Origin: Octopus bimaculoides | Lineage: Eukaryota | Assembly: GCF_001194135.2 (NCBI RefSeq) | Contig: NC_069008.1 | Location: 16,204,565 to 16,268,564 of the forward strand | Direction: 5' to 3' | DNA length: 64,000 nucleotides | Shown: piece by piece, positions 7,541-63,529 of the stretch | How the letters are laid out: each line of letters starts with the position of its first letter | How positions within the stretch are numbered: position 1 is the first letter of the stretch | Program-made: the position numbers and the translations under genes | The notes under the pieces: model-generated | What the model was told of the DNA's origin: nothing | The model's input: only the letters and a program-made list of their open reading frames with translations | The model's database searches: none

Positions 7541-7861
7541 TGGAGGCGCAATCGCCCAATGGTTTGGGCAGCGAACTCGCGGTCATTGTGAGTGTTTATT
7601 GAGCGAAAACACCTAAAGCTCCGGCAGGGGATGGTGGCGAACCCTGCTGTATTCTTCCACCGAACCCTGCTGTATTCTTCCACCACAACTTTCTCTCACT
7701 CTTACTTCCTGTTTCTGTTGTGCCTGTAATTCAAAGGGTCAGCCTTGTCACACTGTGTCACGCTGAATATCCCCGAGAACTACGTTAAGAGTACACGTGT
7801 CTGTGGAGTGCTCAGCCACTTGCACGTTAATTTCACGAGCAGGCTGTGCCGTTGATCGGAT
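7541..7861 (+). mobile_element. tRNA(Arg)-like SINE, family A (compatible with octopus OR-type SINEs)
   Basis: Head tggaggcgcaatcgcccaatgg and a body shared with copies at 12.4, 23.4, 28.0, 37.6 and 44.2 kb; runs into a gap. Confidence 0.8.
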
Positions 7862-12146: not shown

Positions 12147-12403
12147 NNNNNNNNNNNNNNNNNNNNNNNNNNNNNNNNNNNNNNNNNNNNNNNNNNNNNN
12201 NNNNNNNNNNNNNNNNNNNNNNNNNNNNNNNNNNNNNNNNNNNNNNNNNNNNNNNNNNNNNNNNNNNNNNNNNNNNNNNNNNNNNNNNNNNNNNNNNNNN
12301 NNNNNNNNNNNNNNNNNNNNNNNNNNNNNNNNNNNNNNNNNNNNNNNNNNNNNNNNNNNNNNNNNNNNNNNNNNNNNNNNNNNNNNNNNNNNNNNNNNNN
12401 NNN

Positions 12404-12745
12404 TTCCAGTTGATCCGATCAACGGAACAGCCTGCTCGTGAAATTAACGTGCAAGTGGCTGAGCACTCCACAGACACGTGTACCCTTAACGTAGTTCTCG
12501 GGGGATATTCAGCGTGACAAGGCTGGACCCCTTTGAATTACAGGCACAACAGAAACAGGAAGTAAGAGTGAGAGAAAGTTGTGGTGAAAGAGTACAGCAG
12601 GGTTCGCCACCATCCCCTGTCGGAGCCTCGTGGAGCTTTAGGTGTTTTCGCTCAATAAACACTCACAACGCTCGGTCTGGGAATCGAAACTGCGATCCTA
12701 TGACCGTGAGTCCGCTGCCCTAACCACTGGGCCATTGCGCCTCCA
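12404..12745 (-). mobile_element. tRNA(Arg)-like SINE, family A
   Basis: Reverse complement of the family A consensus, including A box tggcccagtgg and B box gtttcgattccc. Confidence 0.85.
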
Positions 12746-13723: not shown

Positions 13724-14458
<735 letters not shown>

Positions 14459-19410: not shown

Positions 19411-21097
<1,687 letters not shown>

Positions 21098-23428
21098 TTC
21101 TCTAAGGGATACAAAGAAACCCAACCATTGAAGTTTCTCACAGTATTAAAATTTTCCCTTATCTTCTCTCACCACAGCATATAATTTCCTTTCTCTTCTT
21201 CTTCTTCTTGTTATAATTTATTCCTTAGAAATATTTCAAGTATTATCAACTGTGATTTTATTGATATCTAAAATTCTGCAAACCCCTTTGTAAATATATT
21301 CAAGTTCAGATCAGAGCAAATATTTCACAGTAATTCCAGTCTAGATTTATTGCAGTTGGGTTATTATATCTCTTCTCTAAAGCATTTTCTGTTAGTCTTT
21401 AGAACATGATAAATATTCCAGATGTATCCAATGTTAAAAAAGTTGTTTTGTGCCAAAGTCATCCATTAATCTGAAATAAAGAAACAATATTAGATATAGA
21501 GGAGAGATTAAAATGGAAATGTTGCAACATTTCTATACTGATTAACAAATGACATCATATAACATTGGGTGAAATCTAAAAATTTGTAAACTCCAACTAC
21601 ACCCTCACAGTGTGTAACATTTTATCTGTCAGGCACACTGTGGCCACCAACAGAATGTTATAGTCAAATCTTCTGAGTGTCTGACAATATATGCTTAGAT
21701 TGCAAATAAAAGTGTAAGGGGGGGGGGGCTAGCTGTTTGCATGATGATAGCATTTATTGTTTAATCTCCAATCATCATCAACCAAGGGGCAACAGTTTGG
21801 CGTGCAGCTGTCTTCAAGAATTTTGCGTTTCTCATTTTCACCGTCTCTTCGTTGCATGGTGTGTCGTTTTAGATTTCACTCTTTTACTTGTTTCAGTCTT
21901 TTGACTGTGGCCATGCTGGAGCACCGCCTTTAGTCGAGCAAATCGACCCCAGGACTTAGTCTTTNNNNNNNNNNNNNNNNNNNNNNNNNNNNNNNNNNNN
22001 NNNNNNNNNNNNNNNNNNNNNNNNNNNNNNNNNNNNNNNNNNNNNNNNNNNNNNNNNNNNNNNNNNNNNNNNNNNNNNNNNNNNNNNNNNNNNNNNNNNN
22101 NNNNNNNNNNNNNNNNNNNNNNNNNNNNNNNNNNNNNNNNNNNNNNNNNNNNNNNNNNNNNNNNNNNNNNNNNNNNNNNNNNNNNNNNNNNNNNNNNNNN
22201 NNNNNNNNNNNNNNNNNNNNNNNNNNNNNNNNNNNNNNNNNNNNNNNNNNNNNNNNNNNNNNNNNNNNNNNNNNNNNNNNNNNNNNNNNNNNNNNNNNNN
22301 NNNNNNNNNNNNNNNNNNNNNNNNNNNNNNNNNNNNNNNNNNNNNNNNNNNNNNNNNNNNNNNNNNNNNNNNNNNNNNNNNNNNNNNNNNNNNNNNNNNN
22401 NNNNNNNNNNNNNNNNNNNNNNNNNNNNNNNNNNNNNNNNNNNNNNNNNNNNNNNNNNNNNNNNNNNNNNNNNNNNNNNNNNNNNNNNNNNNNNNNNNNN
22501 NNNNNNNNNNNNNNNNNNNNNNNNNNNNNNNNNNNNNNNNNNNNNNNNNNNNNNNNNNNNNNNNNNNNNNNNNNNNNNNNNNNNNNNNNNNNNNNNNNNN
22601 NNNNNNNNNNNNNNNNNNNNNNNNNNNNNNNNNNNNNNNNNNNNNNNNNNNNNNNNNNNNNNNNNNNNNNNNNNNNNNNNNNNNNNNNNNNNNNNNNNNN
22701 NNNNNNNNNNNNNNNNNNNNNNNNNNNNNNNNNNNNNNNNNNNNNNNNNNNNNNNNNNNNNNNNNNNNNNNNNNNNNNNNNNNNNNNNNNNNNNNNNNNN
22801 NNNNNNNNNNNNNNNNNNNNNNNNNNNNNNNNNNNNNNNNNNNNNNNNNNNNNNNNNNNNNNNNNNAACCCTGTAGTTATGCCAAAAAGAGTACATACTT
22901 GTTGTAATTTGGTTATCTATAGTCCGATGATATTTCGGAATTACAATTCCTTCTTCAGATCTTCTTAGCTGGAGTCTCAATAATTTATAGAATTAAACAG
23001 AAGCGTGCTTTCCGGAATACGGTGCAGAAGCATTTCATGATGGGGTAAAACAATGTCCTAAATGAATGAGAGTTTACAAATCCAAAGAAAGTGTACGCAG
23101 CAGAATAAAACATCACTTACTGTTACGAAACAATGTGGAACATGATAAATGTTCAAATAATCCGTAGACAGTTATCAAGTTCTAGAATATTCTTCTATTA
23201 TATATTTTCTCCGTGGGATTGAGTTGAGACACAAATATAATACATATTATTCGCTTGACATCCTCGTCAACAAGAGACAGGAGGTAGCGTGTATCTATGC
23301 GCGATGCTGGCTGTTGATTGAACCAACCAAATCACGCAGAGCTGGATGCAGATATTGACAAAGGGAAAGTAGTCCTCCAACAGGTTGAACGAAATCTACT
23401 TTATTTATATGTAGTAATTATCATGTTA

Positions 23429-24054: not shown

Positions 24055-26720
24055 CTACTGCTCTGCAGTCTTGAATAATCGTCCCCGCCGCTTAATTTTT
24101 CAGACCCCCGACTCTTATTTATTTTTCAGATTTCTTGCCCACCACATCCGCTTTTATCCCCGCACCACTCCACACGCTTATTAATTTCTAAGATTCTCTT
24201 CTGCCCCACTTTTATTCAAACCCTTCCCCCCTATTAAATTTTAGTAATCTACCTCCGGTGAAATTTTATTGTAAGCTATTTGTATTGATGCAACAGCTGG
24301 CAGATCTAATAATTTTATTTTACTTTAAAATCGTCATACATATATGACAAAAAAAAAAAACATTACAAATTATACCATGTTATAAAATGAACAGGATATA
24401 TAAACTAAAATAATTCTGGGTTTAAAAAAACCATCAAGGGTGACAGCCCTTCAACATTTTAGGGCATTCATAACCTTTAACCCTAAGAAAAACAATCATT
24501 TCAAGACACAACACAGGACATATTATAAACTGGGAAAATGCTGTCAGAAAATATGCATTATATCCAGCCAGAGTCTATAAAGACTTGAGGCTGGATAACT
24601 GCCCCAGTCTGCAACATATGTGTGAGTTTGCTGCAACTCCACACTGTAGTAAACAAATCTTCATTTTCAATTTCTCTACCACTCACCGACACAAATTCCC
24701 TGCAAACTAAGAACTTCAATGACGAATTGTTTATCCTTACAGGACAAGCTTTTGACAAAATAAGGATTTAACAACATAAACACGACTCAAGTAATTTCTT
24801 TTTGACCTTTTTTCATAATATCTTGACAGAGAAAAGTGTATTTCGTGCTGCGACGTATGGAAATTCTTCTATAAAAGAAAAGCAAGCCGTTGCTTTCGTG
24901 GTAAACAAATGCAAAGAAGAGTATGATTCTAAATTAGAGCAAATATAAGGGGAAACTCATTGGGATACTGAAAGGAAACCCCATATCCCAGACACCCCAA
25001 TACACAGGTATCTCGCCAAAGAAGTTCATTTGTTTTTACTCAAATTTGGCCGGTGTCAAAAACTCTGATGGACTATTTGGGTTCTGCTGTTAAAATAGCT
25101 AAACACTTCTATGAAAAATATCTGAAAAGCAAACTTCACAGCACTGAAAGAAATCCAAAGAAACATTTCAGAGTCGCTGGAGGAGATCGTAAAACAAAAA
25201 GCACCAGGTATGAGAGATACCTTGTTTGAAGTGGTTTGTGGATGTTAAAGCATTACTGCATGTGAGATTACCACAAGCTCTTTTCCTATTAGAGGCTGAG
25301 AAATTTTATGAGGAGTGGATTCGCCAACGCCCAGACACACCAACTGAGGACAAGCTTTGTATTTCAAGAAGCTGGATGAAAGGTTGGCAAAAAGAGTATG
25401 GGGTATCACTGAAATTTCTAAACAAATGCATTTGAATCTCCAAAGAGCAATGTGTTGGGTGCATTCAGGATTATTTGAAGAACATATGATGTGTGCATCA
25501 TTATTTCCTTGACAAATTTGGTGTAGATCAAATGTCCTTGCACCAGAATAAAAGTGGCAGACAATCTACTTTATCGTTCAGAAATCAAGATACGTTCATC
25601 AAAGAAAACCATCATTTGTCCAGGGAACGTATCACAGTGTTCACCCAGGTTAGCAATGATGCCAAAATCAATCTTATCCCAGAGTTTGTATTTAAAGGAA
25701 CTGGAACAAGACCACCACTACTGAATGCCGAGCATACAATGAAATATCAAGAGGTTCCTATAAATTAGAACAGCCGCTCTGTACTATTGAAAACCTTCCA
25801 AACCATTTCAATATGTTTTCACATGCAAATTTGCCGTTTATGTGCTTGGTGATTACATGGTGCATTTGATGCCGGAGGTGAGAGATACCCTCTGGAAAAG
25901 GGTTATGTGCTAGTGAGCATCGGTAGTGGTATCATCCGATTTCTTCAAATTAGCGACACATACTTTCACAAACAATTGAAAGCAAAATATGGTGAAATAG
26001 AGAAACGAAAGATGCTAAAGAAATTAGTTCAAACACCGAATAAGACACTCACGCCCCATCAATCTGAGATGATGCAGATGCTACAACAGACACATGCAGA
26101 TTGCAATATTGATGTCGAAGCTGATTTCAAGTCGACGTGGGACACAAACACTTCGAATGGGTCTGAAGATTATAAGCTGTCAGACCGAATCATGCACCTT
26201 GTCGGTCCGTCGACGCGAGAGTTTTGTCTAGAGATGACTTGAAAACCCTGCCCAAATACTATTCAGAGAGTCATTAAGAACTTAATTCCACTGAAAGGGG
26301 TCAAATGTGGAAACAATATTCAAGGCTCAGAGCTATTTGATGGTGACAGCATTGAGGAAAAAGCTGCCAAAAAGTGAGTCAGAAGATGAAAGCAAGCCAT
26401 CTGGGACTCTTTTGGAGGTGATTGACCCATCTGGAGGAATCACCATGGAGATTTCGCAGGAACCAAAGCACGGTCGGCCAAACATGATGACAGTAAGCTC
26501 TATTTCTTTTGTTGGAAGCAGCAGTGACGACCAGGTTAATAAAGTTGCCCTGTTCCTAGCAAAAAATACAGAAGGTGTCGGATGAAAACACGACTTCTAC
26601 ACTTTTTTTGCCATACAGAAACAAACTCATGTCAACTGCCAGTGAAGCATGGCGATCCATAAAGAAGCGAATATCGAAACCAAGAAACCTGCAGAGGGAC
26701 AGTGATGAAAAATCATGAGT
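24055..26720 (+). mobile_element. Decayed pogo-like (Tc1/mariner superfamily, DDE_1-type) DNA transposon
   Basis: Fragmented ORFs: KHFRVAGGDRKTKAP, WFVDVKALLHVRLP...WMKGWQKEYGVSL, DQMSLHQNKS...KENHHLSRERITVFTQVS...PEFVFKGTGTR, LQISDTYFHKQLKAKY...NGSEDYKLSD. The block is absent from the paralogous flanks at 38.1-38.3 and 52.5-52.75 kb, which sets the approximate boundaries. Confidence 0.75.
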
Positions 26721-27429
26721 CTATAGCGGCTGTTGTTGGCTGTTATTAAATGGAAAAAAAGGTTACTATGAATCATGCTAAAACAGTTTCGTGTATAAAT
26801 ATAATGTTTATTCTGTGCTCACCTTTTGTGGTGGAAGCATGTAGTTTGATACAAAAACATGTGTGCTTACATACAAAGAAAGTTTTGATTTTTGCTTTTG
26901 CACTGAAAGAAGTAACATATAATATTTGTATTACAGTATCTATGCATGTGTGTGATGAGAACAGTCATTTTGAGAATGTGTGTGTGATAACAAAATATCT
27001 TCATTTACAAAATATCTTATGTCAAGGTGAATAGACATGTAACATGTGTGAAGCTGCAGTGGAGACGTGTGTCTTTGACCAAGGCCTGGCAGTAACTGAG
27101 ATCGTTTCTGCAGTGTAGCTCAGAACGAGGCTACTGTATCAAAGCGAGGCTAGCTACATCGATATGTTTGTCTGCTGTGCAGGACGACTGTAGCGCCTCT
27201 GGTCACACGTTATTACACCTCAGTTATGTCGCTATGATACATAGCTTCCTGCTAGACTTGAAAAAGTCAAAAAGAGGTAACGAAATGGCGTATGCAAATA
27301 TGCAGTGCAGAATGCAGGTAAGAACATGGAATACAAGCAGAAGAATGCAATGCAACAAAGAATGAGAAACTAAAATGAGAAAGCAGAGTATGGTAAGGGT
27401 AAACAGAACATGAACACAAAGAGATAAGT

Positions 27430-27613
27430 AAAATGTTCAATACAGTTCTATATTTAAGAGATGAGGAATTATTTACATTATTTACATTATTTACATTTGA
27501 CGGATATTTCTCCTCATCTTGTTTGTTGTTAACACAACATTTCGGCTGATATACCCTCCAGCCTTCGTCAGGTGTCTTGGGGAAATATCGAACCTGGGTT
27601 CTCATTCCTAACA
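27430..27613 (-). mobile_element. Family H body (inverted copy) with hammerhead at 27531-27576
   Basis: Reverse complement of the family H body; CUGACGA core intact, stem III reads GAAAUGUU. Confidence 0.8.
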
Positions 27614-27614
27614 A

Positions 27615-27842
27615 TGGCGTAGTGGTTAAGAGCGCGGGCTACTAACCCCAAGGTTCCGAGTTCGATTCACGGCAGCGACCTGATTAATTATAATAATAAT
27701 AGTAACATCGTTAGGAATGAGAACCCAGGTTCGAAATTTCCCCAAGACACCTGACGAAGGCTGGAGGGTATATCAGCCGAAACGTTGTGTTAACAACAAA
27801 CATGATGAAGAGAAATATCCGTCAAATGTAAATAATGTAAAA
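27615..27842 (+). mobile_element. Family H SINE: tRNA-derived head, (TAA)n linker, hammerhead body
   Basis: A box TGGCGTAGTGG 27615-27625, B box GTTCGATTC 27660-27668, then ttaggaatgagaacccagg...gtcaaatgtaaataatgt. Confidence 0.85.
27746..27791 (+). ncRNA. Minimal type-I hammerhead ribozyme motif
   Basis: GACAC CTGACGA A GGCTG gagggtatat CAGCC GAAA CG T T GTGTT. Confidence 0.72.
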
Positions 27843-27989
27843 TGTTCAAGTCAATTAAAGTTCGAAGGAATACTGTGAAGAACAAAAATGCATCGTTGGT
27901 GATATGTGTTGAAGAGTGTTTGGTAAGTTCACAGGTAGTTTATTATAGTTCGGATGCATATAGTTTTAGACAGCTTGGTGGACCAAAGT

Positions 27990-28165
27990 TATTGTTGGCA
28001 CTCCGTCGCTTACGACGTCGAGGGTTCCAGTCGATCCGATCAATGGAACAGCCTGCTAGTGAAATTAACGTGCAAGTGGCTGAGCACTCCACAGACATGT
28101 GTACCCTTAACGTAGTTCTCGGGGATATTCAGCGTGACACAGTGTGACAAGGCTGACCCTTTGAA
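27990..28165 (-). mobile_element. SINE family A, 5'-truncated, abutting the gypsy integrase relic
   Basis: ttcaaagggtcagcc...gacggagtgccaacaa; junction microhomology ttcaaa. Confidence 0.8.
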
Positions 28166-29175
28166 ATCCGTCCAGTGAGAAAAACTTTGGCAACAGATTC
28201 TGCAGTGATGTCTACTAAAGGAATAGCTTCCAGCCAAAATGTGAAGTGATCAATGCAGATGAGAAGGTAGATTGGTCATGATCAATGTGTACATGGTTGA
28301 AATGCACATCTAGTGTTGAATGTGCCAAGGAGATGTTTGGGTCTGTGGTGAAAAAATGCATGGTTGACCGCTGGATGCTGCAGAGAATGTGCCATGCTCA
28401 ATTTTCTGGTTGGTCATTTTCCTGTTGAGAAAAAGTACAGGGTTGGGTACACTTATGTGCTGAAGCTCCAAACTTGGCATGATACCAGCATATAGATGAA
28501 TGAGTGGGGGACAAAGGATAGCAAGGTGAGAAAGATCAATCGAAAGAACGCCTTCTGAGTGAACGTGACCTGGAAGTGCAAAGAGCTGCACTCTCTCCCT
28601 TTAATTCAAGTATTGCCTTCAGGCTTGCAGCCAAGGCAAGGTCCTTATCAGTGGAAACCGATGCTACTGATGGCTGTGCAGATGTATACAGTGGTCAGCT
28701 TGGTGGGACTGCTGGAAGTCTCTATGATTCTGTTGGCGATGGAGGCTATTTGTTTGACGGGAGTTGTCTCCACTATAGAGGCTAGGATGGCTTGAATGTT
28801 AGAGGGCAACCAGGAAAAGACAAAGAATTTCAATAAAGCACTATTGGCAGGTGCATTTTGGGCCCATTCCTTCATGCGGTGTAGAAGTTGCAAGGGATTA
28901 CGGTCGCCCAAGTGCTCATCATTTATGAGGGTTTGAAATTTTCTTTCTTCCGACAAGAACGTGCGTCGAACAATCTCATGCTTAATGCTCCTATGCATGG
29001 CATCATGTGATGGTTTGGTTACCAGGTCCCTCACAGTGGCTATATCAGACGGTGGTATTGCGCCAAATAATACATGGAGCCGTTGGTCTTCGGAGGCAAT
29101 ATTGTTTGCGGCAAACGTCGATTCAGTCTGTGCGATATACACTTTCACATCACCCATGAAACAAGGTAAGGAACT
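28166..29175 (-). mobile_element. Internally deleted Ty3/gypsy LTR retrotransposon: gag (DUF7041-like) plus integrase fragment
   Basis: Gag LPCF...AQTESTF...IPPSDIATVRDLV...EHLGDRNPLQLLHRM...LPSNIQAILAS and knuckle ICWYHAKFGASAHKCTQPC; integrase LGTF-TLDVHFNHVHID...YLLICIDHFTFWLEAIPLVDITAESVAKVF. Protease, RT and RNase H are absent. Confidence 0.85.
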
Positions 29176-29205
29176 GTGTTCTAATGAATTTTGACAATGA
29201 TACAA

Positions 29206-29901
29206 TCACACTTTTACATGGAGAGATGTATGTGTATTTAAGTTACTTCTCTGAGAGAATGATTTACCACAGAAGTCACAGGAATATGGTTTCTCTCCTG
29301 TATGAATACGTTTGTGTTTAGTTAAGCTAGAGTTTTCAGAGAATGACTTACCACAGATATCACAATTATATGGCTTTTCTCCCGTATGAGTACGTTTGTG
29401 TTTCATCAAGTCACTACTTGCAGAGAATGATTTACTACAGACATCACAGTGAAATGGTCTCTCTCCTGTATGAATAAGTTTGTGTGTAGTTAAGTTACCT
29501 TTTGTTGAGAATGATTTACCACAGATAACACATTGAAATGGCTTTTCTGCTGCATGAATACGTTTGTGTGTAGTTAAGCCGCTGTTTGCAGAGAATGATT
29601 TACCACAGATCACACAGTGATATGGTTTCTCTCCTGTGTGAATACGTTTGTGATTGCTTAACTGGCTATTCTCAGTGAATGCTTTGCCACAGATATCACA
29701 GTGATATGGTTTCTCTCCTGTATGAATACGTATATGTTTACTTAAGCTACCATTTTGAGAGAATGATTTACCACAGGCATCACAGTGAAATGGCTTCTCA
29801 CCTGTATGAACACGAATGTGTTTAACCAAGTTACTACATGTAGAGAATGATTTACCACATATTTTACAATGATATCCTATGTTCACTAATTCTTTTGACA
29901 T
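29206..29901 (-). CDS. G4: C2H2 zinc-finger protein, 8 fingers, 231 aa
   Basis: Intact ORF MSKELVNIG...HTSLHVKV; acceptor 30231/30232; exon 1 at 33442-33574. Confidence 0.93.
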   Translation of the reverse strand: MSKELVNIGYHCKICGKSFSTCSNLVKHIRVHTGEKPFHCDACGKSFSQNGSLSKHIRIHTGEKPYHCDICGKAFTENSQLSNHKRIHTGEKPYHCVICGKSFSANSGLTTHKRIHAAEKPFQCVICGKSFSTKGNLTTHKLIHTGERPFHCDVCSKSFSASSDLMKHKRTHTGEKPYNCDICGKSFSENSSLTKHKRIHTGEKPYSCDFCGKSFSQRSNLNTHTSLHVKV

Positions 29902-32489
29902 TTCTCTAAGGGATACAAATAGACACAACCATTGAAGTTTCTCACAGTAATAAATTTTCCCCTTATCTTTCTTCTCTCACCACAGCATATAATTTCCTTT
30001 TTCTTGTTATAATTTATTCCTTAGAAATATATCTGCTGCTATCAACTGATTTTACCAATATCTAAAATTCTGCAAAAGCACCAGGTAATGAGATGAAGAA
30101 ATGTTGGTATTTATCTCAAGTCAGAGCAAATCTGCTCTCTAAAACATTTTCCTTTGGTCTTTAAAACATGATTAATATGTCAGATGTATCCAGTGTACAA
30201 AAGTTGTTTTATGCCAACGTCATCCATTAATCTGTAACAAAAAAGAAACAGTATTAGATATACAGGAGATATCAAACTGGAAGTGCTGCAATATTTCAAA
30301 TGACATCACATAATATTGGGTGAAATCTAAAAATTTGCAAATTACAATTACACCTCCACATTGTGTGTGTATATATAGCAGTTGAATAAATTTAAAACAT
30401 ATTCTGGTTTTCACATTTTTTATTATGGTATTTTAGCAAAATTAGCGCTTTCATGCATAGTATACTCATGAGATTTCTAATGTGTTTAACTGACAGTTGA
30501 GTTCTTGACAACTTTAGTACCTCTTAGAACGCACCAACCAGCTGAATTTTTCAAATACCTTTTGATCAATCCGCAATAAAAACAACACCACAATCACAAC
30601 TGATATTTATTACAGACACACAGACACACCAGTATCCAGATTTAAAATCATGTCACCTAACACACACAAAATGCAACATCCCATACTGTCTAACCAGGAA
30701 AATTTGTACTATAGTTTAATGATGCAAATACCAGAAACACATGATTTATAGAACTCAAAGGGTCTCTGCTCAAGCAAAATTACCCTCTCCTACTTATAGA
30801 AAATACTATACAACAGCCGACAGCATGAAAATAGGTCATACAAATTGTTATTAATATTGGAAAAAATTCTAAGTTTCCAACATTTTTATGATAGAGAGTT
30901 AAGAGAAGTTATATTGTGTAAGAGAGTGAATTCAATATGTATTTCAGTTCCAAATGTTATGAAGCACGCGTTATGGTTAAATTACTTTATACAGTTATAA
31001 TATTTAGACAATGGTTTCTTCAAAATGTTAGGATTAAGAGAAAAACCAAGAATGAATAGTGAGAGAGGGGTTTGGAGGAGTAAAGTTGAAAAAAGTGTGA
31101 CACACTGACAATTGCTTTCGCATTTATTATTATAGATATGAATGTTTTGAAAATCATTAGCAAAATCTAAAACGACATACCACGTAACGAAGAGAGGGCA
31201 AAAATGAGACAGAAAAAATTCTCAAAGACAGCTGCATGCCAAACTATTGCTCATTGCTTGATGATGATGATTAAAATTTAACCAACAAAACACGATCACC
31301 ATGCAAACGGCAACGGCCCTCTTACACTTTCATTCGCAAACTAGGCATATAGTCAGACATGCAGTAGGCTTGACTATAACATTCTGTTGTTGGTCACTGC
31401 ATGCCTGACTATATATATGTATATATATATATATATATNNNNNNNNNNNNNNNNNNNNNNNNNNNNNNNNNNNNNNNNNNNNNNNNNNNNNNNNNNNNNN
31501 NNNNNNNNNNNNNNNNNNNNNNNNNNNNNNNNNNNNNNNNNNNNNNNNNNNNNNNNNNNNNNNNNNNNNNNNNNNNNNNNNNNNNNNNNNNNNNNNNNNN
31601 NNNNNNNNNNNNNNNNNNNNNNNNNNNNNNNNNNNNNNNNNNNNNNNNNNNNNNNNNNNNNNNNNNNNNNNNNNNNNNNNNNNNNNNNNNNNNNNNNNNN
31701 NNNNNNNNNNNNNNNNNNNNNNNNNNNNNNNNNNNNNNNNNNNNNNNNNNNNNNNNNNNNNNNNNNNNNNNNNNNNNNNNNNNNNNNNNNNNNNNNNNNN
31801 NNNNNNNNNNNNNNNNNNNNNNNNNNNNNNNNNNNNNNNNNNNNNNNNNNNNNNNNNNNNNNNNNNNNNNNNNNNNNNNNNNNNNNNNNNNNNNNNNNNN
31901 NNNNNNNNNNNNNNNNNNNNNNNNNNNNNNNNNNNNNNNNNNNNNNNNNNNNNNNNNNNNNNNNNNNNNNNNNNNNNNNNNNNNNNNNNNNNNNNNNNAT
32001 GATTATCATGATATATAGATGAAATCATATACATATATCTATCCATTTACCCCTCTCTCTCTTTTCGAAAAATGTTTTTTTTTTTTTCTAATCCCTTTCC
32101 CATCTTCCTCTCTGGACCGATTCTGATTAATTTTGTGGCCACTACACGATTAAAAACTAGAGGAGAAGCCTTTTTAGAAAAAAAAAAAAAAAATTCTGGC
32201 GAAAGCGCGTGTGATTTAATGGAAGTTTGGTCGTTGTTTCTAGCACATCCCATGACCGGTAAGGTGTAGTAGGGTTCATAAAATCAAAAATTTTCAAAAC
32301 AATTTCTTAATAGCATAATTGAATTTCTGCTATTAACGGGGAGAAAATACTGAAAACCATCAACCAATACTTGTCAAGAGTGACAAAGAAACGAGGAAGG
32401 TGGCAGTTGGATATGCTAGAAGCAACAGTCAAATCGCCCTTTAACCACACCCCTTTACGTACGAAAACATTTACTGTTTTTACCGAAAA

Positions 32490-35621: not shown

Positions 35622-36401
35622 ATGTCAAAAATATTAGGAAAATCACAACATTGTTGTGAAATTTGTGGTAAATCATTCCCCGCAAGTAGTGACTTGGTTA
35701 AACACATTCGTTTTCATACAGGTGAGAAGCCATTTCACTGTGATACCTGTGGTAAATCCTTCTCTCAAAACTGTAGCTTAAGTAAACATATACGTATTCA
35801 TACAGGAGAAAAGCCATTTCACTGTGACACCTGTGGTAGATCATTCTCTCAAAAGGGTGACTTAACTAAACACATACGTATTCACACAGGAGAGAGACCA
35901 TATCATTGTGATGTCTGTGGCAAATCATTCTCTGCACACAGTACCTTAGTTATACACAAAAATATTCATTCAGCGGAAAAGCCATATAATTGTGATATCT
36001 GTGGTAAGTCATTCTCTCTCAGGAACAGCTTAATTAGTCACATACGTATTCATACAGGAGAGAAACCATATCACTGTGATATCTGCGGGAAGGCATTCAC
36101 TGAGGATAGTCACTTAAGGAGACACAGACGTATTCACACGGGAGAGAGACCGTATCACTGTGATTTCTGTGGTAAATCATTCTCTGGAATTACTGACTTG
36201 ACTACACACAAACGTATTCATACAAAGGAGAGACCATATACTTGTGATATCTGTGATAAATCATTCTCTGACAACTCGAACTTAACTCGACACAAACGTA
36301 TTCATACAGGGGAGAGACCATATCCCTGTGACATCTGTGGTAAAACATTCTCTCGGAGAGGTAACTTAACTACACATGCATCTGTCCATGTAAAAGTGTG
36401 A
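35622..36401 (+). CDS. G5: C2H2 zinc-finger protein, 9 fingers, 259 aa
   Basis: Intact [12 protein letters not shown]...HASVHVKV. Confidence 0.93.
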
Positions 36402-51245: not shown

Positions 51246-53244
51246 TAAATATCTGGCTGTGATAAACGAATCTTTATTATTGTCACCAGCGGCCTTGGTG
51301 GTGATGTTCTAAAAGATATATTTTATACTTTGTGATTAATATTGCTTAAGGCGGCGAGCGGTCCAGATGGATAATATGTAAACGGAACCCCCCCCCTTAA
51401 TTTTATTATTATCNNNNNNNNNNNNNNNNNNNNNNNNNNNNNNNNNNNNNNNNNNNNNNNNNNNNNNNNNNNNNNNNNNNNNNNNNNNNNNNNNNNNNNN
51501 NNNNNNNNNNNNNNNNNNNNNNNNNNNNNNNNNNNNNNNNNNNNNNNNNNNNNNNNNNNNNNNNNNNNNNNNNNNNNNNNNNNNNNNNNNNNNNNNNNNN
51601 NNNNNNNNNNNNNNNNNNNNNNNNNNNNNNNNNNNNNNNNNNNNNNNNNNNNNNNNNNNNNNNNNNNNNNNNNNNNNNNNNNNNNNNNNNNNNNNNNNNN
51701 NNNNNNNNNNNNNNNNNNNNNNNNNTATTATTATCTTTTTTTTTGTTTTTACGGAATCCCACGTTTTAGGCTATGGAGATTCCGATTCTGAAAAAAATAA
51801 TTGTGTGTAAAATTTCAATTTCCCCACCCCCAAGCAGGCTACTGACATGCTAGAAATAACAGCCAAATCTCACAAAACTGCGATAACATAAAGCAAGAAA
51901 TGTGTAATCAATCTGCTCACCTTTCTGTAGAGATTTCTTTCAGAGTAATTTCTCGCAGTAATATGAAATTAGAGCGTTTTTTTTTGTTTTTTTTTTAATT
52001 TCAGAAATATAACAGTTTTGTAGAGAAGTGTCTTTGGGGAATCCGTGCTGGTGGAGTTGAGGGGAGGGGGATAAACTTCCGTAATGTGTTCGAGAAATGT
52101 ATAGAAATTCTCGAAGTTTTTGAATATACGCCACCGATGCCGTTCAAGCAAACAACAAATTATCAACGAAACTGACCATTAGGTGTGTTTGGTAGTTAGA
52201 AAAGGAAATAAAATTATGAGGGAATTAACATAAATAAGTCAACTTACTGTTAAACGACTTACACCTTCGCTATAGCAACCAAAAAGTGAACAAATGTATA
52301 AATAGTTAAAACTATCTTGTGTTAAGGTGAACGTTAATGTTTGTGAATAAGACAGGGCAACCTACGTATTCCAGGGTCGGCGAACCATTACTTTTGGGAT
52401 TAAATATTTGATTGTAGTATTAAGTCGCTAATTGGTTGTCCCCTATTTTACGAGACAGTGGTAAATGGCTTTTAATCAACAAATCAATCAATGCACTTTC
52501 CTCTCCCTTCCGGAATTTTTTCATCTGGACTTTAAATAGAGAGCACAAATTAGTTTCATCGCTATTGTTGCATGCTTCCACCAATTGAGTTCAGGAGAAG
52601 ACCCGGTCGCCAAAAAGAAAAAAAAAATTCTAATGATAAGTAGAAAATGTATTGGTCTATAGATAGCAAATGTTCCACTTGTATGAAGAGAGGTGTATGA
52701 TATCGAAGACAAGAAGCTGAACCATAATTACATACCGTTTTGTAGCAGCTTTCGTTGGCTGTTTAAATGCGTGGTATTAAATAGAAAAACAATAAGACAT
52801 TTTTGTGTATAAATATATTGTTTATTGTGATCACCTTTTGTGGTGGAAGCATGTAGTTTGATACAAAAAAGTGCTTATATACAAAGAAAGTTTTGATTTT
52901 TGCTTTTGCACTGAAATGAGTAACATATAATATTTGTATTACAGTATGCATGTTTATGCGTAAGGAGAACGGCCATTTTGAGAATGATATATCTTGTGTT
53001 GAGGTGAACAGACACGTGAGTCACATGTGGGAGATTGCGCGTGCAGGAAATGAGTTTCTACAGTTTAACTCAAAAGGCTAGATGCCTCATCAATATATTC
53101 ATCTGCTGTGCTGGTAGACTCATCTATTACGATGTAATATGTAGCTCTTCCACAATTTCAAACGTTTCTCAGCTTACAAGCAATTCCTGGAGATATAACA
53201 TAGGAAACTTGTAACACAACTATTTTTAATATAGATTTACAAGT

Positions 53245-55148: not shown

Positions 55149-56339
55149 TCACACTTTCACATGGATAGACTTATGTCTAGTTAATTTACTTCTTTGAGAG
55201 AATGATTTACTACAGACATCACAGTGATATGGTCTCTCCCCTGTATGACTACGTTTGTGTATAGTTAAGTTGGGCCTCTGAGAGAATGATTTACCACAAA
55301 TATCACAGTGATATGGTTTTTCACCGGTATGTATACGATTATGTATCGTTAAGGCATACCTTTGAGTGAATGACTTGCTACAGATATCACAGCGATATGG
55401 TCTCTCTCTTGTATGAATACGTTTGTGTTTAAACAAGTCAGAGATAACAGAGAATGATTTACCACAGATATCACAATCATATGGTGGTTCTCTCGTATGA
55501 ATAAGCTTGTGTCTAGTCAACTGACTACTCACAGAGAATGATTTACCACAGACATCACAATGAAATCGCTTTTCTCCAGTATGAATAAGTTTGTGCGTAG
55601 TTAAGCTACATTTTGCAGAGAATGATTTACCACAGATATCACAATGATATGGTTTCTCTCCCGTATGAATACGTCTGTGTTTAGTCAAGTCACCAATTCG
55701 AGAGAATGATTTATCACAGACATCACAGTGAAATGGCTTTTCTCCTGTATGAATACGTATGTGTTTAGTTAAGCTACCTTTTGTAGAAACTGATTTACCA
55801 CAGATAACACAGTGAAATGGCTTTTCTCCTGTATGAGTACGTTTGTGTGTAGTCAAGTCATTACTCCTAGAGAATGATTTACCACAGATAACACAGTGAA
55901 ATCGCTTTTCACCTGTATGAACATATTTGTGCGAAATTAAATAATCTTTTGTAGAGAATGAGTGACCACAAATAACACAGTGAAATGGCTTCTCTCCTGT
56001 ATGAATATGCTTGTGTCTTTTTAAGTTACCTTTCAAAGAGAATGATTTACCACAGGTATCACAGTGAAATGGCTTCTCACCTGTATGAATACGCATGTGT
56101 TGTCTTAAGTTATCGTTTTGAGAGAATGACTTACCACAGGTATCACAGTGATATGGTTCCTCTCCTGTATGAATACGATTGTGTATTCTTAATTTAGCAT
56201 TGTGACAAAATGATTTACCACAGATAACACAGCGAAATGGCTTCTCACCTGTATGAACAGGACTGTGTTGAATCAAATTACTATGTCTAGAGAATGATTT
56301 ACCACAAATTTTACAATGATATCCCAATGCGTTTGCCAT
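55149..56339 (-). CDS. G8: C2H2 zinc-finger protein, 14 fingers, 396 aa
   Basis: Intact ORF MANALG...HKSIHVKV; acceptor 56757/56758; exon 1 at 59232-59360. Confidence 0.94.
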
Positions 56340-61929: not shown

Positions 61930-62964
61930 TCATGTCTCTCCTGTATGAATACGTTTGTGACTAGTTAAGCTGTTGCTCTGAGAGAATGATTTACCACAGA
62001 TATCACAATGATATGCTTTTTCTCCCGTATGAGTACGTCTGTGTTTAGTCAAGTCACCAATCCTAGAAAATGCTTTACCACAGACATTACAGTGAAATGG
62101 CTTTTCTCCAGTATGAATATGTTTATGTTGAATTAAATGAGAAATTGTGCAGAATGATTTACCACAGATATCACAATTATATGGTTTCTCTCCTGTATGA
62201 ATACGTCTGTGTTTAGTCAAGTCACTACTCCCAGAGAATGATTTATCACAGACATCACACTGAAATGGCTTTTCTCCTGTATGAATACGTATGTGTTTAG
62301 TTAAGCTACCTTTTGTAGAAACTGATTTACCACAGATAACACAGTGAAATGGCTTTTCTCCTGTATGAATCCGTATGTGTTGACTTAAGCTACTGGCATG
62401 AGAGAATGATTTACCACAGGTATCACAGTGAAATGGCTTTTCACCTGTATGAATATATTTGTGCGTAATTAAGTAATCTTTTGTAGAGAATGATTCACCA
62501 CAGATAACACAGTGAAATGGCTTTTCTTTTGTATGGAAATGTTTGTGTCTTTTTAAGTTACCTTTCGTAGAGAATGATTTACCACAGGTATCACAGTGAA
62601 ATGGCTTCTCACCTGTATGAATATAGTTGTGTGTAATTAAGCTATCTTTTGCAGAGAATGATTTACCACAGGTATCACAGTGAAATGGCTGCTCACCTGT
62701 ATGAATATTTTTGTGTGCAATTAAGCTACCTTTTGAAGACAATGATTTACCACAGGTATCACAGTTGTATGGTTTCTCTCCTGTATGAATACGTATGTGT
62801 TTAGTTAAGTTACCGTTTTGACAGAATGATTTACCACAGGTAACACAGCGAAATGGCTTCTCACCTGTATGAACACGAATGTGTTTAACCAAATTACTAT
62901 GTGTAGAGAATGATTTACCACAAATTTTACAATGATAGCCTAATTTCTCTAATGCTTTTGACAT
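61930..62964 (-). CDS. G9: C2H2 zinc-finger protein, 12 fingers, 344 aa; 13th finger lost to a nonsense codon
   Basis: ATG 62964 (MSKALEKLG); TGA in the linker; remnant finger continues in frame to the ancestral stop at 61849-61851; acceptor 63383/63384; exon 1 is inferred to lie beyond the window end. Confidence 0.9.
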
Positions 62965-63529
62965 TTCTCTAAGAGATACAAATAAATCCAACCATTCAAG
63001 TTTTTCAAAGTATTAAAGTTTTCCCTTATCCTTTTTTTCTCAACACAGCGTATAATTTTCTTATTCTTGGTTTTGTTATAATTTATTCCTAAGAAATATT
63101 TCTGCTGCTATCAAGTTATGGATATCTAAAATTGTGTAAACTGCTTTGCAAATATATTCAAGTTCAATTAGAATGCAAAAGCACCAGACAATGAAATGGA
63201 GAAATATTGCTATGAATCTCAGCTCACAGCAAATATTTCACAGTAATTCAACCATAGATTTCTAAAGGTTGGGTTATTATATCTGTTCTCTTAAACGTTT
63301 TCCTTTAGTCTTTAAGACATGATAAATATTCCAGATGTATCCAATGTTAAAAAAGTTGTTTCATGCCAATGTCATCCATTAATCTGAAATAATAAAGAAA
63401 CAGTATTAGATATGGAGGAGAGATCAAAACGGAAATGTTCCAACATTTCTTTATTGATTAACAAATGACATCATATAACATAGGGTGAATTCTAAAAATT
63501 TGTGAATCACAATTACCCCTAGCCATTGA

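Follow-up and report, generated by a model that had tools for sequence, protein, structure and literature searches.

Introduction

The vertebrate SCAN domain was exapted from a gypsy capsid, as stated in a passage of PMC6525542 that cites Emerson & Thomas 2011. In SCAN zinc-finger proteins the domain is N-terminal to a tandem C2H2 array, is translated and conserved, and corresponds to one lobe of the capsid (CA), its C-terminal domain. Here we describe a locus of Octopus bimaculoides in which gypsy capsid-type sequence and a C2H2 array likewise lie side by side. The stretch analysed (64,000 nucleotides of contig NC_069008.1, positions 16,204,565 to 16,268,564; hereafter the window) carries a C2H2 zinc-finger (ZNF) gene, which we call G4, and directly behind its stop codon, in the same reading frame, a piece of a Ty3/gypsy-type gag gene. 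The initial annotation of the window, made from its letters alone, had read this arrangement as an incipient ZNF-Gag fusion that could supply a zinc-finger protein with an oligomerisation domain. Our analysis indicates that the piece is very probably a decaying gag/pol remnant that took the place of most of the G4 3' untranslated region (3'UTR) in a microhomology-associated rearrangement, and that its transcription today is passive.

Further described systems provide points of comparison. The domesticated gags of the Arc, PNMA and PEG10/RTL kind are autonomous genes with their own start codons, conserved synteny and purifying selection. Known readthrough genes have conserved in-frame extensions behind the stop codon, together with either a leaky stop context (UGA-C, often CUAG) or structured RNA downstream. 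In transposon-derived 3'UTRs, a host mRNA ends in sequence transcribed from a transposon fragment. A paper on the cephalopod C2H2 expansion (PMC12513265) makes no mention of gag, retrotransposon or effector-domain fusions, and our literature search for DUF7041, the Pfam family to which the octopus gag piece belongs, found no papers.

Results

The conserved 3'UTR of G4 is cut 30 nucleotides past the stop codon

The window contains C2H2 zinc-finger genes in a tandem cluster that is interrupted by many N gaps; the paralogs are highly similar, their coding sequences being 76-83% identical to each other. All paralogs have a common protein start, and most end in ...HVKV-TGA. The G4 open reading frame (ORF), which with its stop codon runs from 29928 to 29206 on the minus strand (first in-frame ATG at 29901-29899), encodes a protein ending in ...SLHVKV. 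A protein look-up found no record of exactly this product, and a search for octopus orthologues of the protein was dominated by vertebrate ZNFs, with the best Octopus match only 61% identical.

We compared the 3' flanks in two alignments, of six and of eight paralogs. The first 30 nucleotides (nt) past the TGA (TTGTATCATTGTCAAAATTCATTAGAACAC) are nearly invariant among the paralogs, most of which then have a further conserved block of about 100 nt; G4 matches them for exactly 30 nt and diverges at the junction 29176/29175, where the gag sequence begins. This junction is spanned by contigs from four independent DNA runs, and contigs of the paralogs have loose ends exactly at 29176. RNA contigs from eight runs and raw RNA reads also span 29175/29176 with no mismatch. 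Paralog alignments, DNA contigs and the Pfam match given below together bear out the initial placement of the cut, and of its joining to a DUF7041-type gag.

A search from G4 to the next assembly gap did not recover the missing part of the canonical UTR. Because this UTR does not resume downstream of the remnant, we rejected a simple insertion with target-site duplication. Untranslated region and element have in common, at the join, an imperfect microhomology, GAACA.C, which would suggest end-joining or deletion rather than integration. Among the ZNF paralogs, the proximal 3'UTR (the first 30 to ~130 nt) is less variable than the end of the coding sequence (29% vs 41% variable sites); this conservation suggests, from the alignments, either a constrained UTR element or gene conversion.

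The sequence behind the junction belongs to a Ty3/gypsy gag

Directly past the stop codon, the TTG at 29205-29203 opens a frame of 185 codons in the same phase as G4, which closes at the TGA at 28650-28648, in agreement with the initial annotation. In five other paralogs, the frame after the stop is open for only 32-72 codons. Residues 21-94 of the 185-codon ORF match Pfam DUF7041 (PF23055) with an E-value of 7.6e-11 and 42.7 bits, the curated cut-off being 28 bits. A phmmer search returned 3071 homologues, 670 of them at or below 1e-10, and the long ones (P0012, P0016, P0097 and others) have the domain order DUF7041-RVP-RVT_1-RT_RNaseH-Integrase_H2C2-rve. Since this is the Ty3/gypsy gene order, the comparison supports the identification of the downstream piece as a Ty3/gypsy Gag of the DUF7041 type.

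The public relatives closest to the transposon piece are from Octopus bimaculoides itself. The closest protein, P0001 (LOC106870529), has 60% amino-acid identity; at the DNA level, its locus, L001, shows 81% identity to window positions 29181-28341. P0001 starts with MNSSSLPCF, and the window reads EH/SSLPCF across the join (slash); the element sequence therefore begins three codons past the gag ATG, with neither leader nor long terminal repeat (LTR). The relative itself is decayed: L001 6001-7685 (O. bimaculoides CM046611.1) contains a decayed gag fused to a reverse-transcriptase fragment, with a 15-nt deletion of its own. The LOC106870529 gene model, annotated as 'uncharacterized protein', spans 1685 nt for 257 amino acids, and the locus is probably a transposon pseudogene, not a host gene.

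An AlphaFold (AF2) model of the window gag, built with 72 homologues, is all-helical with a predicted local distance difference test (pLDDT) score of 84.8. The best of its 49 fold matches in the PDB were the Arc capsid (7r23_A, probability 0.96), murine leukaemia virus (MLV) and human immunodeficiency virus (HIV) capsids, the Arc C-lobe and the C-terminal domain of PEG10 CA, with Foldseek E-values of at least 0.18; the best TM-scores (0.55-0.61) were those of single-lobe matches (Arc C-lobe and PEG10 C-terminal domain). In a library of viral structures, the model matched retroviral Gag and caulimovirid coat proteins. A capsid fold of the window gag is thus consistent with the predicted structure but not proven, because the E-values of the fold matches are weak. 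SCAN (PF02023), to which the initial annotation had proposed to compare the structure alongside CA, had no match, either in the Pfam scan at E<=1 (which returned only DUF7041 and a weak CNOT11) or among the 49 PDB fold matches.

A separate observation concerns the wider family: protein P0148 (1865 amino acids, with two DUF7041 stretches) also matches Pfam PNMA at E 2.7e-5, a hint that DUF7041-type Gag may be linked to PNMA-type capsids.

The element survives as a truncated and decaying remnant

About 1 kb of the element survives (29175-28166). Element sequence upstream of gag codon 4 is missing, as is pol apart from a vestige, and gag itself carries both a frameshift and a nonsense codon, so none of this resembles an intact element; no LTR pair was found in the relative locus L001. 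The first disabling lesion in gag is an 8-nt deletion relative to L001 at ~28693, past the last predicted helix (residues 150-164), and the initial annotation had correctly placed the first frameshift and stop only after the capsid-like region. Because this deletion shifts the frame, the 185-codon ORF no longer follows gag in its last ~15 codons. In the remainder of gag, a knuckle-like motif (CWYHAKFGASAHKCTQPC) lies at 28490-28437; its family pattern, CxYHxxFGxxAxxCxxPC, is present in 51/150 homologues. Protease, reverse transcriptase, RNase H and the integrase zinc domain are deleted from pol (~1.85 kb missing relative to L001), leaving only an integrase-core piece of about 100 nt, and pol is deleted and broken as first described. 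Pfam scans of the knuckle and integrase fragments and of neighbouring small ORFs gave nothing significant.

Beyond the pol vestige lie high-copy repeats resembling short interspersed nuclear elements (SINEs). Words from these repeats reach depths of up to ~2e5 in both RNA and DNA runs, and similar repeats are found near 7780-7850 and 12400-12520. An ARAGORN scan of the repeat region found no intact tRNA.

The remnant is transcribed as part of the G4 3'UTR

In three RNA-seq runs, we observed continuous low coverage from ~26,885 to ~30,250, with none outside and no drop at the stop codon. In eight RNA runs from five studies, assessed at the level of contigs, a contig from 28138 (or 28422) to 29205-29213 spans the junction and, in most runs, also the stop codon. 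The depth of this gag contig equals that of a G4-specific contig at 29186-29269 (e.g. 69 vs 60, 16 vs 18 and 7 vs 11), and raw reads of run X43 cover 28950-29250 without a break at ~8x or more. Since the RNA coverage continues through stop and junction, these data show that gag is part of a G4 3'UTR of ~2.3 kb and is passively transcribed. The initial annotation had named polyadenylation of the G4 mRNA before gag as an outcome that would overturn its proposal, and this is not what we find, as coverage continues to ~26,880.

A side observation touches the far end of this transcript. Positions 26779-26978, downstream of G4, are 87.5% identical over 200 nt to 52793-52986, a segment that follows the paralog at 55149 with matching orientation and at a nearly equal distance from the stop codon (2228 vs 2163 nt). 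The likeness may go back to the original duplication unit, or reflect another repeat.

We considered whether the gag-derived sequence is kept for a function as RNA, the swapped 3'UTR altering the post-transcriptional regulation of G4, for example through loss of a conserved UTR element or through targeting of transposon sequence by small RNAs. As the family's proximal 3'UTR is well conserved, more so than the coding end, its loss likely changes regulation; moreover, G4 with its new UTR is expressed in many runs, and the junction is present in 4/4 DNA runs examined. The remnant itself, however, shows no sign of constraint and has taken deletions and SINE insertions, and expression alone does not prove function. 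We regard this explanation as unlikely.

Tests for translation and selection

Read through, the kept 30 nt would encode a stop-free linker, LYHCQNSLEH, followed by the open gag codons. We therefore asked what speaks for a functional or nascent ZNF-capsid fusion, produced by readthrough or by adenosine-to-inosine (A-to-I) editing of UGA to UGG, in which eight fingers, the 10-residue linker and a two-lobed CA would serve self-association in the manner of SCAN. The frame is open and in phase, the predicted CA-like fold is complete to its last helix, gag lies on the same mRNA as G4, and an origin of SCAN by exaptation of a gypsy capsid is accepted. Products of such readthrough would contain the junction peptide ...HVKV-X-LYHCQNSLEHSSLPCF... 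and the peptides LYHCQNSLEHSSLPCFMGDVK and VYIAQTESTFAANNIASEDQR.

Against these points stands the stop codon itself, which, as the initial annotation had already noted, is not in a strong readthrough context: it reads UGA-UUG, and the 123 nt from the stop codon fold at -17.8 kcal/mol, compared with -23.2 kcal/mol for shuffled sequences (z +1.71), leaving no downstream structure. RNA reads, at a depth of at most 8 at the stop, contained neither T>C at 29206, which would mark A-to-I editing of the UGA, nor a splice bypassing the stop. In the paralog family we found no codon periodicity after the stop (11/10/15 variable sites per codon position); the ZNF family therefore does not appear to use readthrough. 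Family-wide readthrough, as a reading of the post-stop frames that stay open for 32-72 codons in the paralogs, was rejected on the same lack of periodicity and because, on our reading of the conserved post-stop sequence, a second frame is open to a similar degree.

The substitution pattern of gag also argues against a fusion. Compared with L001, a paralogous copy and not an orthologue, the window gag has a ratio of nonsynonymous to synonymous substitution rates (dN/dS) of 0.63, with differences of 0.19/0.16/0.25 at codon positions 1/2/3, close to neutral. It departs privately from family-majority residues at 12 sites, as does the clearly defunct L001 copy (12), and thus decays as fast as a dead copy. 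It retains 60% of conserved columns, whereas the family mean is 81% (standard deviation 11%). Among the changes are W23Y, F24I, Y71H, L114W and R132W, at sites where the family is 83-96% conserved; they include the WFAQ to YIAQ substitution of the initial annotation and extend it. No annotated C2H2-DUF7041 fusion protein occurred among the 150 best family representatives, and a word-indexed search returned only P0001.

A frame open for this long is unsurprising if gag drifts neutrally. In neutral simulations at 5-17% divergence, a 160-codon gag stayed stop-free with P 0.48-0.10; the chance of being in phase is 1/3, and that of a stop-free 10-codon linker is ~0.6. The in-phase open configuration is real, but it is not statistically remarkable. 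Of the initial claim, what holds is that G4 is one stop codon away from eight fingers plus CA; for an incipient fusion that adds an oligomerisation domain, we found no positive evidence. It appears very improbable that some tissues (e.g. neural ones, where A-to-I editing is heavy) convert the G4 UGA to UGG or permit readthrough at low frequency, giving eight fingers with a C-terminal gypsy capsid, and a functional or nascent fusion in general is just as improbable.

Four points count against the reading of gag as a passively transcribed remnant. First, both gag lesions lie in the last 100 of its 260 codons and none in the first 160 (P ~0.15), a weak hint of non-randomness. Second, the substitution tests compare paralogous transposon copies rather than orthologues, so that selection before and after insertion is not separable. 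Third, the ORF contains a single-nucleotide polymorphism (SNP) at 28711 (G>A; synonymous in the post-stop frame, AGC>AGT; seen in two RNA runs and in one DNA run, where it appears to be homozygous), and one SNP gives no population-level power. Fourth, the mRNA includes the in-frame gag, so that readthrough or editing may take place at a low level, the stop being covered by at most eight reads.

An independently translated, domesticated gag of the Arc/PNMA/PEG10 kind, starting at an internal ATG at ORF residue 17, could draw on a transcribed ORF of ~170 codons with a predicted capsid fold. It would, however, have no promoter or transcript of its own, lying downstream of a complete ORF under continuous coverage of equal depth; gag no longer has its native ATG, its substitutions follow a relaxed pattern, and no called protein is recorded for the ORF, all of which leave this explanation highly implausible. 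Finally, an origin of the ZNF-gag join as an artefact of the draft assembly, conceivable from the many N gaps and highly similar paralogs, is rejected by the DNA and RNA reads that span the junction, and its probability is negligible.

Features of the locus and neighbouring genes

The features of the locus are collected in Table 1.

Table 1 Features at and around the G4-gag junction (window coordinates; slash marks the join).
Feature	Positions	Strand	Evidence
G4 C2H2 zinc-finger ORF, 8 fingers	29209..29928	-	Pfam zf-C2H2, E 3.3e-51, 8 stretches
G4 stop TGA, next base T (UGA-U)	29206..29208	-	ancestral stop, common to all paralogs
Kept 30 nt of the family-wide conserved 3'UTR, TTGTATCATTGTCAAAATTCATTAGAACAC	29176..29205	-	paralog alignments
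Junction 29176/29175, imperfect microhomology between UTR (TAGAACAC/CC) and gag start (ATGAACAGC/AGTTCC)	29170..29181	-	pair alignment with L001; paralog contigs break at 29176
Gag capsid-like region, 160 codons, ancestral gag frame, in phase with G4	28696..29175	-	DUF7041 match 28924-29145
Out-of-frame tail of the 185-codon ORF	28648..28695	-	follows 8-nt deletion at ~28693; TGA 28650-28648
Rest of gag, shifted frame	28398..28694	-	TGA nonsense codon 28538-28536; stop 28400-28398
Pol vestige: short protease-start-like stretch joined to integrase-core fragment	28166..28397	-	integrase core ~100 nt, 28269-28174
SINE-like high-copy repeats bounding the gag/pol remnant, within the transcribed 3'UTR	27440..28165	.	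reads in the hundreds break off at 28165
Single-copy distal portion of the G4 3'UTR	26880..27439	-	RNA coverage ends ~26,880-26,900; AATAAA at 26812
Counterparts of the conserved proximal UTR	just 3' of the stops at 13729, 19416, 47589, 55154, 61854 and 16802 (-) and at 36396 (+)	-, +	paralog alignment

Two other members of the cluster differ at their ends from the family. The ZNF ORFs 61930-62991 and 19691-21124 end 81 nt and 280 nt, respectively, short of the family's canonical stop/UTR block, and an in-frame TGA at about 61,9xx is visible in the paralog alignment. Both are candidate pseudogenes, probably with premature stops or frameshifts. Just past the end of the G4 transcript, two adjacent ORFs of 111 and 92 codons lie at 25907-26585 on the plus strand, with no Pfam match and no RNA coverage.

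Discussion

The locus is best explained as an ordinary transposon remnant, and nothing suggests its translation or its upkeep by selection. In this explanation, a 5'-truncated and internally deleted Ty3/gypsy copy with a DUF7041-type Gag would have taken the place of all but the first 30 nt of the G4 3'UTR. A non-homologous or microhomology-mediated deletion or rearrangement would have removed the LTR, the leader and the gag ATG together with the rest of the UTR, and owing to this loss of the canonical UTR, transcription of G4 continues across the gag remnant and the SINE-like repeats as far as ~26,880. Chance would account for the shared phase with G4 and for the 160 gag codons still open, the substitution patterns suggesting that the sequence drifts like a pseudogene, and the protein made would be the ordinary 8-finger ZNF that ends at the TGA.

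The locus illustrates that a rearrangement can strip a paralog of a conserved 3'UTR and bring an ORF of predicted capsid fold to within a single nucleotide change of a fusion. Translation beyond the stop, if true, would represent a living intermediate of SCAN-type capture of a Gag capsid by zinc-finger genes, independent in cephalopods; the present evidence does not point toward such an intermediate.

Comparison with known systems places the locus as follows. As in Ty3/gypsy Gag proteins of the DUF7041 type, the window sequence scores over the gathering threshold, has a predicted two-lobed helical fold consistent with a capsid and a CxYHxxFGxxAxxCxxPC motif downstream, and has homologues that continue into protease, reverse transcriptase, RNase H and integrase. 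In contrast to Ty3/gypsy elements, the window copy is without LTRs, leader, ATG and nearly all of pol, and it carries a frameshift, a nonsense codon and changes at conserved sites, which mark it as a remnant. With SCAN zinc-finger proteins it has in common the physical linkage of gypsy capsid-type sequence to a tandem C2H2 array, but the window gag is predicted to be a full CA with both lobes and lies 3' of the stop codon, with no SCAN profile match and no sign of translation or constraint. The capsids of Arc and PEG10 are its best structural matches, whereas none of the autonomy, start codon, synteny and purifying selection of the Arc, PNMA and PEG10 genes is shown for it. Like programmed readthrough genes, G4 has an in-frame extension behind a UGA; it differs from them in its UGA-U context, in having no downstream structure and in that conservation of the extension is not demonstrable. 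As in transposon-derived 3'UTRs, the host mRNA here ends in sequence that comes from a transposon fragment, and the window provides a documented example, within the octopus ZNF expansion, of an ordinary transposon fragment turned into the 3'UTR of a host gene.

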